Notes: generated by a model not told the origin, from the sequence alone. 64,000 bases of DNA from Bugula neritina (GCA_964035545.1 OZ037773.1:6725751-6789750); one strand, 5' to 3'. Counted from the stretch's first letter, positions 18,401-21,400 are shown. Numbers and translations: made by a program.

Positions 18401-21400
18401 ATATTTTCACACCTGGTTTATGAAATACTAATACACTATAGAAATCTCTGCTGCGTGTTGTGTCTATTAATTTGATGACTCTTTTTCTGTGGCAGATTCG
18501 CTCCTATGACATAAGTGCTGAGTCCACTTTCTCTCAACTCAGATATGTTGATCTCGACAAACTGCTGAATGGAGTCGGACAGGTGAATCATTCTGTTTTT
18601 ATATCTTAGTACTTGTTGTTAAAGAATTGTAAGTCTGTTAAGACTAGTAGCTGTAAGAATATGTCTATCAAACAAACAAACTCTAAGAAAAGAAAGTCAG
18701 CCAAAGATTGTATTTTACTAAATTAAAATTGTCGAGTTCAGTTTTTAGACATTTTACTATCTTTACAAATAAATTAAGTGTTAGTCTCGGTATTATAGTA
18801 GCACACAACAGTTTTTAGTCATGAATTTATCATTTTGTTACAATATATTTTACTTTTTTGGAGTTTTCTCAACCCCGAGAGCCTGTTTCACTTTAGTGAG
18901 CCCAGCAGTGTTGCACACTAGTAAGCTGCTGCATGGGTTTCACATTCTTTCCACCTTCCACTTCATTTCATTCAGTTGGCTTCCATTTCTTGGCCAATTC
19001 TAATATGTAATTATTTTCTTTCCTTGGAGAAGATCTGCTATTGTTACCTGCTTTACTTTACTGAACCCCTATTATGTCTGCATGTAGTTATGTAGTGTGG
19101 AATTGCATTCCTATTGGTTAGGAGATGAGAGTGGCTGATACCATAAGTTTATAGCTTACATTACGTGTAGTATGTTGAGATTCATGTTATTGCTGAAAAC
19201 GAGCACACAACTCCAAATTTGCTGTGTCAACTGCACTAAATACATTTTTCAATCTTAAAAATAAAGTAGCCAAGTGATAGTTTTCCATGGCCATAGTATT
19301 GCTCCGAATTTCATTGCTATACCAGTGATTGAAGATCTGCTGTCAAAAAGTAGTTATCAGGCAGTTCTGGTGACTGGTACTCGCTCTATGTTCCACACAC
19401 ACACATGCTACTTAACTCTGACATTCCAACTTCTAATCAGAGTTGTGCCCTCAATCCAATAGTGAGATTCAATTGCATTGTTTGCAAACTTTATGAAATA
19501 CTTCATCACTAACCAGTGCTTTTCATGGTGGCAACATGAGTCTTATGAATTTGACAGCAGTTGATTTAGTATCTGAAAATTGTAGCATTTATGTTCATTT
19601 ATCGAATTGAAGTATAATATTACTATGTAGACACTACTTTAGCTTACTCGGCTTGTACTGAACTGATCTATAAATGCACTCTATGAAAGTTACCTTTTTA
19701 TGATTTTTACCCGAGTTCAATGTGACAATAATGACTGGTTTTTTATGAAATCAATTTAAACTTTTCTATCTGAAGCTGTTGCATTAGTTTTGCAAATATT
19801 GTAACTATAGGGATAAACTTTAAGTTATTGATGATTAGTTATTGATCTTAGATAACAACTATTAGTTATAATTAATTTTTCTGTTGTTTTATTGTATGTA
19901 CAGAATATAGTGAAAAAAATGAACACAGGATTTATAATTGTGATGAGACAATAAATATTAATAAAGCATAGAGATTTTACCATGTTTTAAGCATTCCAGC
20001 TTTCATTGTTATCAGAAACCAGTTATTAATAAGACCGTATTAACTAAGTTTAAGTTGCCTTTATACCTTCACGATTTTCGGTCAGAAGTTTTTTTCAACA
20101 GAGGTATAAACGCAACTCAACTCACACCATTGTGACCTATTTTCTCTTTCATACTCCTCCTCTTAAGCCATCTAAACTACTAAAACAAAAGAAATAGGTT
20201 GGTTGAGCAATGTCTTTGTTTCAACGCCCTATTTTAGGTAAGTCACTTAGTCTAAGTTAGTCACTCTGTGAAAGGCCTTTCAACAGTAAAATTTTCACTT
20301 TCTTCATCACTCCCTTGACCTTCCTCACTCCCTTGACCTTCCTCTCTCTCTTCACTTTCCTCTCTCTCTTCACTTTCCTCACTCCCATCACTTTCCTCAC
20401 TCCCATCACTTTCCTCACTCCCTTGACCTTCCTCACTCCCATCACTTTCCTCACTCCCTTGACCTTCCTCTCTCTCTTCACTTTCCTCACTCCCTTGACC
20501 TTCCTCACTCCCATCGATTGCACCAATGTATACACTTGCAACATTATCTTCATTCCAATTTGGTAAGATTATAGGTTTTTGTGTTGTTGATCGGAATTCG
20601 CTGAGTTGCCAGTCGTTATATCTCTCTGCTTTTCTACTATTAACAATAGATGCGTTCATGTGCATTCTTCGGACACTTATTTTTCCATCAGCTTTTTTTA
20701 TTTCTTCTGATAGTTGGCCTATATAATGCGGCGAATAGGACTTCCTGCCTTGTATAGTAGTCATTAGCAACTCTGTGTTTGGTACTGTCAGTTGTGGACT
20801 TTGTGGGTCTTCAACTTTTGTCTTGATATTGTGAGCTATCTCTCTGTCATTGTTACTCACTGACAACTTGTCATAGCCTTGAAACTCAATGTCTCCTCTC
20901 CCATTCATTTCCACCTGTATTTCTGTCTCCGTCAGTACTTCTCTTTTTAGTTTTAGTGTTCCATTCTGTACTCGTATTTCTACTGTTTTCTCTTTTAGAT
21001 CTCTTAAATATATTTCTGTTTGAGTAGTTTGTAGGCGTATACAATTTAGTTTTGTAGCTAATTTATGTTTGGTGGATATTTTCAAAGAGGTACCTTTTAA
21101 ATCTATTTCTATCTCTGGTAATTCCCTTTCCCCACTTTCCTGAATTTCCCAAGTTTGAATCACATTTTCTTCTATGCATATTTCAGCTGTTATGTATTCA
21201 GTAATGCAGATTTCTACCTCATTTTCTACTTTAAATATTACTTCCGCATCTCCTTCTAGATTCTCTAGTTTCAATTTGCTGAATCTCTGTTGACATACTT
21301 CCATGACAATCACCTAAAACAAAAAAAAATTATATTTCTATAAAAAAAACTCAAACTTCTACAATGCTGAGCTTACCAGTATTTTCTTTTATATTATACT

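Follow-up and report, generated by a model that had tools for sequence, protein, structure and literature searches.

The sequence analysed here is a window of 64,000 nt from Bugula neritina (GCA_964035545.1 OZ037773.1:6725751-6789750; the window is the whole stretch, and positions are counted from its first letter), and the subject is a gene on its minus strand that joins ankyrin repeats to a caspase-like protease region. The gene is read as two exons, here exon A and exon B, and carries a 170-residue insert in the intersubunit linker (L2), between the catalytic Cys and the first strand of the small subunit. The insert is confined to Bugula-type copies of the gene, its reading frame is kept open in them, and it is predicted to form beta strands. 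A folded inserted domain at this site is plausible, the fold itself being a prediction.

Exon A (22563..24296) is an open reading frame (ORF) of 578 codons, with an N-terminal ankyrin-repeat region (Pfam Ank_2 at residues 44-107, E 1.1e-9) followed by a caspase large-subunit-like region. The p20-like core of the latter (22563..22907), recognised by profile comparison with the PDB, holds the catalytic His in CIMAHGEAG (codon 22679..22677) and the Arg179 equivalent in NLRE, and ends with ...HHHIPK directly before a GTAAGA donor (CCAAAG/GTAAGA). The intron that follows (21314..22562), as read from the sequence, is of phase 0 and the GT..AG type, with a poly-T tract before the acceptor. Exon B (21313..20264) is an open frame of 350 codons that opens right after this acceptor with VIVMEVCQQ, the catalytic Cys strand (21287..21313, Cys codon 21295..21293; QACQG in the relatives), and phase-0 splicing of the two exons restores the match to the caspase KPK-hhhQACxG strand. 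The intron has the same position in the paralogues L003, L004 and L025 of the same genome, its phase is also common to paralogues, and its acceptor is conserved in contigs L007 and L011.

Within exon B, the insert as first flagged covers residues 8-177 (20783..21292), and comparison with the relatives places the part that differs from them at residues 10-172 (20798..21286). The predicted strands and the column identity delimit a first beta block at residues 10-49 (21167..21286), which contains a conserved LEGD/A motif (21259..21245; the slash marks the candidate cut). Low model confidence and a high ratio of nonsynonymous to synonymous differences (pN/pS) set apart a hypervariable centre at residues 50-97 (21023..21166), with an IEID/L motif (21112..21098) and most of the indels, and predicted strands together with pN/pS define a second beta block at residues 98-168 (20810..21022). 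The small-subunit-like region, assigned by homology, structure prediction and substitution rates, follows at residues 173-258 (20540..20797) as the PNTELLMTT strand and two helices. The peptides quoted in the initial annotation all lie in the frame 21313..20264 (at 21274..21239, EIEIDLKG at 21115..21092, 20983..20948, 20923..20882, and PNTELLMTT at 20782..20756), and the distance of about 170 residues that it gave is exactly 170 between the catalytic Cys and the Pro of PNTELLMTT. Further downstream, an acidic Ser/Glu/Gly tail derived from an 18-nt tandem repeat of 11.7 copies (20302..20512) is found only in the copy of the window; the orthologues in contigs L006, L007 and L008 lack it and have a short GRESENLSVEVLSESD tail as their C-terminus.

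The flanks of the insert are homologous to caspases. The two exons were each searched and folded on their own, as separate pieces. Profile A2, built from the C-terminal 166 residues of exon A and their counterparts in orthologues and paralogues, matched 156 caspase chains in the PDB, including the caspase-3/6/7 ancestor (E 2.1e-7), caspase-1 (1.5e-6) and caspase-8 (2.4e-4), in an alignment that pairs AHG with SHG and also places the first S1 Arg (NLRE); the best 60 of the 156 matches were all caspases, and no metacaspase was among the matches listed. Another profile, A1, found no caspase in the PDB, and in a single-sequence Pfam scan neither exon matched PF00656. For the small subunit, residues 150-258 of exon B matched 12 relatives (E 2.7e-8 to 6e-4; phmmer against 1.84 billion representative proteins), and 9 of the 10 relatives scanned matched positions 119-232 of PF00656, its C-terminal half, one of them (P0009) over the cut-off with 30.9 bits. 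The initial annotation had expected a caspase small subunit after the insert, and these matches bear this out, but the homology to PF00656 is transitive, via the relatives. The paralogue L004/L010 of the same genome gave 25 and 33.7 bits on PF00656, the 25 bits of L004 being over the cut-off. The catalytic His-Cys dyad aligns with the caspase strands, the Cys of EVCQQ falling on that of QACQG in the relatives, and both residues are kept in all four copies of the gene. AlphaFold2 (AF2) placed the small-subunit helices at residues 195-206 and 214-232.

In the relatives the order is QACQG, an Asp/Ser-rich and disordered-looking linker of 20-83 residues (P0005-P0016), and a P(N/H)TxLLM strand. The linker has 11 residues in the paralogue L009 (after QSCTG) and about 35 in L025 (after QACQK); paralogues and relatives together span 11-85 residues. 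The Bugula insert begins three residues past the Cys and runs almost up to the first strand of the small subunit. Because a long linker is found only in the Bugula-type copies and short ones in the relatives, the oversized linker reported in the initial annotation is confirmed; the linker is also unlike the short, flexible and cleavable one expected in caspases, having 170 residues and being predicted to consist of beta strands. For residues 4-170, the phmmer search over the 1.84 billion representatives returned only a Bugula orthologue. Protein and DNA searches of the own genome (216 Mb) detected no second copy of the insert, a profile of the insert matched nothing among the PDB sequences, and no further insert-bearing copies were detected in the metagenome contigs scanned with the insert alignment. 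On these comparisons the insert is specific to one gene in the Bugula lineage.

Two origins of the insert were considered and rejected. The DNA search of the own genome, which gave no second copy, speaks against a repeat or transposon, and an hmmsearch with the insert profile against the DUF4097-like ORFs of the same genome stayed at E > 0.1. Such ORFs are present at G000:C3:13247749-13261714 (L015-L017), where open frames of 1473 and 1110 aa hold several DUF4097 matches over the Pfam cut-off; they are unrelated to the insert. Among the paralogues, the helical-repeat caspase L003/L009 (G000:C7:9055299-9058655) carries a Lys/Gln-rich repeat of ~120 residues within p20, after the HG motif and before the Cys strand, a second case of a large insertion that the family tolerates. 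The ankyrin-caspase paralogue L025 (G000:C3:1663988-1667365) has one TGA within its small-subunit match and may be a pseudogene.

The nearest proteins in the databases were three ORFs of ~72% identity, one of them named Bugula neritina EB796_017671. All three run into the intron and then stop, and contigs L006, L007 and L008 each hold an intact exon-B homologue 1-2 kb downstream of them. Since the public model (P0002; L006 8001-9542) ends in the intron, exon B is omitted, and the present annotation shows only a truncated ankyrin protein. Along exon A the similarity among the window, L006, L007 and L008 is mosaic: the window shares 89% identity with L007 and 69% with L006 in codons 281-320, and L006 and L007 share 99% in codons 321-360. 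This pattern suggests recombination or gene conversion among the copies, which makes the regional ratios of nonsynonymous to synonymous substitution rates (dN/dS) noisy. The exon A donor of L007 reads TT in place of GT (AAG/TTAAGA, about 9541-9546), with exon B still intact; a non-canonical splice, a defective allele or an error in the sequencing could each account for it. In L006 a WD40 gene on the other strand encloses the gene in one of its introns, and WD40-like ORFs lie near the gene in the window, also on the opposite strand. Directly downstream of the stop codon of the gene, a high-copy repeat at 19967-20133 reaches a depth of ~42,600 against ~100 elsewhere (run X1), with loose contig ends at 20049-20087 within it, and elsewhere in the window there is an open frame of 894 aa at 58838-61522 (+).

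It seems that the insert is translated sequence and not a hidden intron, as far as DNA can show. Its frame is open in all four copies in spite of synonymous divergences (dS) of 0.15-0.32. When the substitutions were placed at random, the frame stayed open in 11% of cases for the window and L006, in 3% for L006 and L007, and in 0.4% for the window and L007, the most diverged pair (P = 0.004). All six indels are in frame, which by our own reckoning would have a probability of ~0.001 without constraint. An additional intron within the insert would have undone the initial annotation; the copies share neither a GTRAG donor nor a polypyrimidine-AG acceptor within it. In addition, the small subunit downstream evolves under purifying selection (dN/dS 0.2-0.3) and can be translated only through the insert.

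Predicted structures support a beta-rich insert. For the AF2 model in the context of exon B, the acidic tail was left out and the alignment had 16 rows, four of which covered the insert. The insert came out as all beta strands, in a first block (10-29, 33-38 and 42-47) and a second (98-103, 109-116, 119-126, 131-146, 149-154 and 162-167); the predicted local distance difference test (pLDDT) was 66-85 for residues 10-47, 66-87 for 98-167 and 31-50 for 50-96. The model resembles a sandwich or jelly roll at modest confidence, and not a solenoid or beta-helix. Plausibly, the insert is a small sandwich of two beta blocks around a variable loop. ZU5, death-fold and Ig-type domains were rejected as candidates, with no Pfam match at E<=10 and none among the listed fold matches. 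A charge-hydropathy plot was uninformative for the insert, because even the small subunit falls on its disordered side.

Constraint on the residues of the insert is uneven. In sliding windows pN/pS was 1.6-1.7 for residues 31-75 and 0.55-0.72 for residues 106-165. Column identity was 82-93% in residues 11-30, and 88-93% over the blocks 11-30 and 111-150. Two of the three pairs had fewer amino-acid differences than under random placement (P about 0.005), and the composition, with 26% Ile/Leu/Val and only 2 Pro, is not of low complexity.

The active site of the insert-bearing gene has also changed. Instead of the QACxG pentapeptide, which reads QACQG in the relatives, three copies have EVCQQ and L008 has ELCQP. 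In caspases the P1 Asp of the substrate is bound by an Arg-Gln-Arg S1 pocket. As judged from the alignments, the first Arg is kept here (NLRE), the Gln has become Glu (EVCQQ) and the small-subunit Arg (Arg341 equivalent) has become Ser, the site reading SYSP where the relatives have AYRG. These changes are confined to the insert-bearing gene, as all the relatives and paralogues examined keep the small-subunit Arg. With two of the three Asp-binding residues replaced, the specificity of the enzyme may be altered and perhaps no longer for Asp, or the protein may have a role as a non-catalytic scaffold. For the same reason it is uncertain that the linker of this gene is cut during activation, as the initial annotation had stated for caspases in general.

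Taken together, we favour a reading in which a fast-evolving ankyrin-caspase gene has acquired a translated, Bugula-restricted expansion of L2 that forms a beta-hairpin-rich module, probably autoinhibitory; we hold it tentatively, at somewhat less than an even chance. Most likely the blocks 10-49 and 98-168 would pack together and the variable, probably flexible centre 50-97 would loop out. An L2 element of this bulk would block the normal bundle of active-site loops, and the enzyme would then probably be held inactive until the insert is displaced or cut, in analogy to type II metacaspases and their autoinhibitory linker domain. It could be cut at two conserved motifs of the initiator type, LEGD/A, which lies 15 residues past the Cys in three of the four copies, and IEID/L, which is present in all four as such or as a close variant. 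Excision by an Asp-specific caspase would be plausible.

Several results weigh against this reading. Folded alone, the insert gave the same strands with a pLDDT of only 50-66 in them and a mean of 49. Foldseek against the PDB returned nothing at E<=1e-3, its best local match being a cupin; the VIA-wide search had GOLD and cupin-type sandwiches on top for both models, at Z 5.4-5.7 and below the usual best background of 7-8; and the shape search of the ESM Atlas did not exceed a TM score of 0.31. Neither internal repeats nor a hydrophobic lag-2 periodicity rose above shuffled sequences, so that an internal duplication of the insert was also rejected. At 0.87-1.0 in most pairs (bootstrap 0.5-2.0), the dN/dS of the insert cannot be told from neutral, which argues against a tightly packed and conserved domain, and hydrophobic positions are kept no better than under random substitution, in a test of low power that was also null for the small subunit. 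About 0.3 [ILV]ExD motifs are expected by chance from our estimate for such a Glu/Ile-rich composition, which makes the two motifs only suggestive. The public model EB796_017671 contains neither the catalytic Cys nor the insert or the small subunit. Nor is there mRNA support for the exon junction or the insert, as the single sequencing run containing the sequence is genomic: contigs of that run cross the intron without joints, which identifies it as DNA, and the Logan contig L011 likewise includes intron sequence. Two protein searches yielded no transcript-derived protein across the junction.

Much of this would be expected if the insert were a translated but largely unstructured spacer, selected for its length and frame and not for its residues, with the beta prediction reflecting a composition rich in Ile, Val, Thr and Glu. 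A dN/dS near 1 with a preserved frame, the hypervariable centre with its low pLDDT, the poor model of the insert alone, the lack of Foldseek and ESM Atlas matches and the unretained hydrophobic pattern all agree with such a spacer, as do the disordered-looking linkers of the relatives (20 to 83 aa) and the long Lys/Gln repeat that L003 tolerates in p20. However, the same set of strands appeared in two AF2 runs, at pLDDT 70-87 in context, the composition is not of low complexity, amino-acid differences are in deficit in two of the three pairs, and the blocks 11-30 and 111-150 are well conserved. We regard the spacer as a real but lesser possibility. The claims of the initial annotation on structure stood in part: the beta-rich character it described rests on the two predictions and is not borne out by periodicity or repeats, and of its folded solenoid or sandwich the all-beta, sandwich-like character stands, whereas no solenoid, no confident model and no specific fold match was obtained.

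The initial annotation had also pointed to DUF2807 and DUF4097, and the insert could be a very diverged member of this beta-strand-repeat group (GIN/toastrack) gained by domain insertion. These are indeed its top Pfam matches, DUF2807 (PF10988) in three of the four copies at E 0.0039-0.01 and DUF4097 (PF13349) in one at E 0.038; they are the nearest clusters by ESM features (DUF4097 at 0.93 and DUF2807 at 0.89, for two copies that are 61% identical); and PDB entry 4qrk, titled as a putative cell adhesion protein, aligned at Z 4.4 over 94 residues. Against this, the best scores of 16.1 and 13.8 bits are below the curated cut-offs of 24.2 and 22.9, only 145-148 of the 256 ESM features are shared with recognition below 2300, phmmer over the 1.84 billion proteins returned no such protein, the insert profile matched neither the PDB nor the DUF4097-matching ORFs of the own genome, and the AF2 model is a sandwich rather than a beta-helix, with no significant internal repeat. 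Membership is not established, and we find it quite improbable. About as improbable is that the insert is missing from the mature protein, through an extra intron or alternative splicing or because exons A and B are not joined and the transcript ends in the intron. The missing RNA support, the public model that stops in the intron and the TT donor of L007 would fit this, but the frame with its in-frame indels is open through the insert, conserved splice signals are lacking there, the constrained small subunit can only be reached through it, and the intron shares its position and phase with the paralogues. That the gene as a whole is decaying into a pseudogene, with the insert as junk, seems highly improbable: a dN/dS of 0.55-0.6 in exon A and ~1 in the insert, together with the altered active-site motif, could be taken as decay, but all four copies, though diverged, keep both frames (578 and 350 codons) intact, the small subunit is at 0.2-0.3, and all copies keep the His and the Cys. 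A further version, unlikely in our view, has an orphan beta-sandwich domain born in the L2 loop within the Bugula lineage, which would serve as a built-in plug or decoy and hold the ankyrin-sensor caspase inactive until an upstream protease of the host or of a pathogen cuts at LEGD or IEID, the hypervariable centre acting as bait under diversifying selection. If that were true, animals would have an equivalent of the linker domain of type II metacaspases, and the birth of a domain within a loop could be dated.

Returning to the favoured reading, a beta-rich linker of ~165 residues in a caspase that also has an altered S1 pocket and an ankyrin sensor at its front end would, if true, show a different way of regulating caspases in animals and a convergence on the type II metacaspases of plants. 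With its restriction to one bryozoan lineage and its lack of homologues, the insert also lends itself to the study of how new protein sequence comes about inside an existing fold.

Animal caspases (C14A) are the textbook case of proteases that become active when a short, flexible linker is cut. The Bugula gene is like them in having its insert at the same site, between the Cys strand and the first small-subunit strand, with homologous flanks and with (I/L)ExD motifs close to the Cys, like those of caspase processing sites. It differs in that the insert has ~165-170 residues against 11-85 in the relatives and is predicted to be all-beta and not a flexible loop, in having EVCQQ instead of QACxG, and in the replacement of two of the three Asp-binding residues of S1. 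The ankyrin-caspase paralogues of the own genome (C2, C3 and C7) share the combination of ankyrin or helical repeats with a caspase and the same intron after ...PK, but they combine short linkers with QACxG-like motifs and an unchanged small-subunit Arg, and the insert is absent from all of them. In the lophotrochozoan molluscs, caspase-3/7 has unusually long intersubunit linkers, which have been reported to be needed for full DEVDase activity (PMC7836458). The likeness is by description only, and those linkers were described as linker sequence and not as a folded domain. The DUF2807 (GIN) and DUF4097 (toastrack) domains resemble the insert in their short strands with Gly/Asn turns, but the insert stays below every curated threshold and has neither profile nor structural confirmation; these domains belong mostly to bacterial envelope or stress proteins. 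Metacaspases (C14B) occur in plants, fungi and protists; they cleave behind Arg or Lys and react to Ca2+ or pH. In the type II enzymes AtMC4 and AtMC9, an extended, structured linker separates p20 from p10 and blocks the active site, a block that is lifted once the linker itself is cut (PMC12122906). There is no sequence relation, as the Bugula flanks match caspases, but the insert is comparable to this linker in length and position, and the type II metacaspases would be its best functional analogy.

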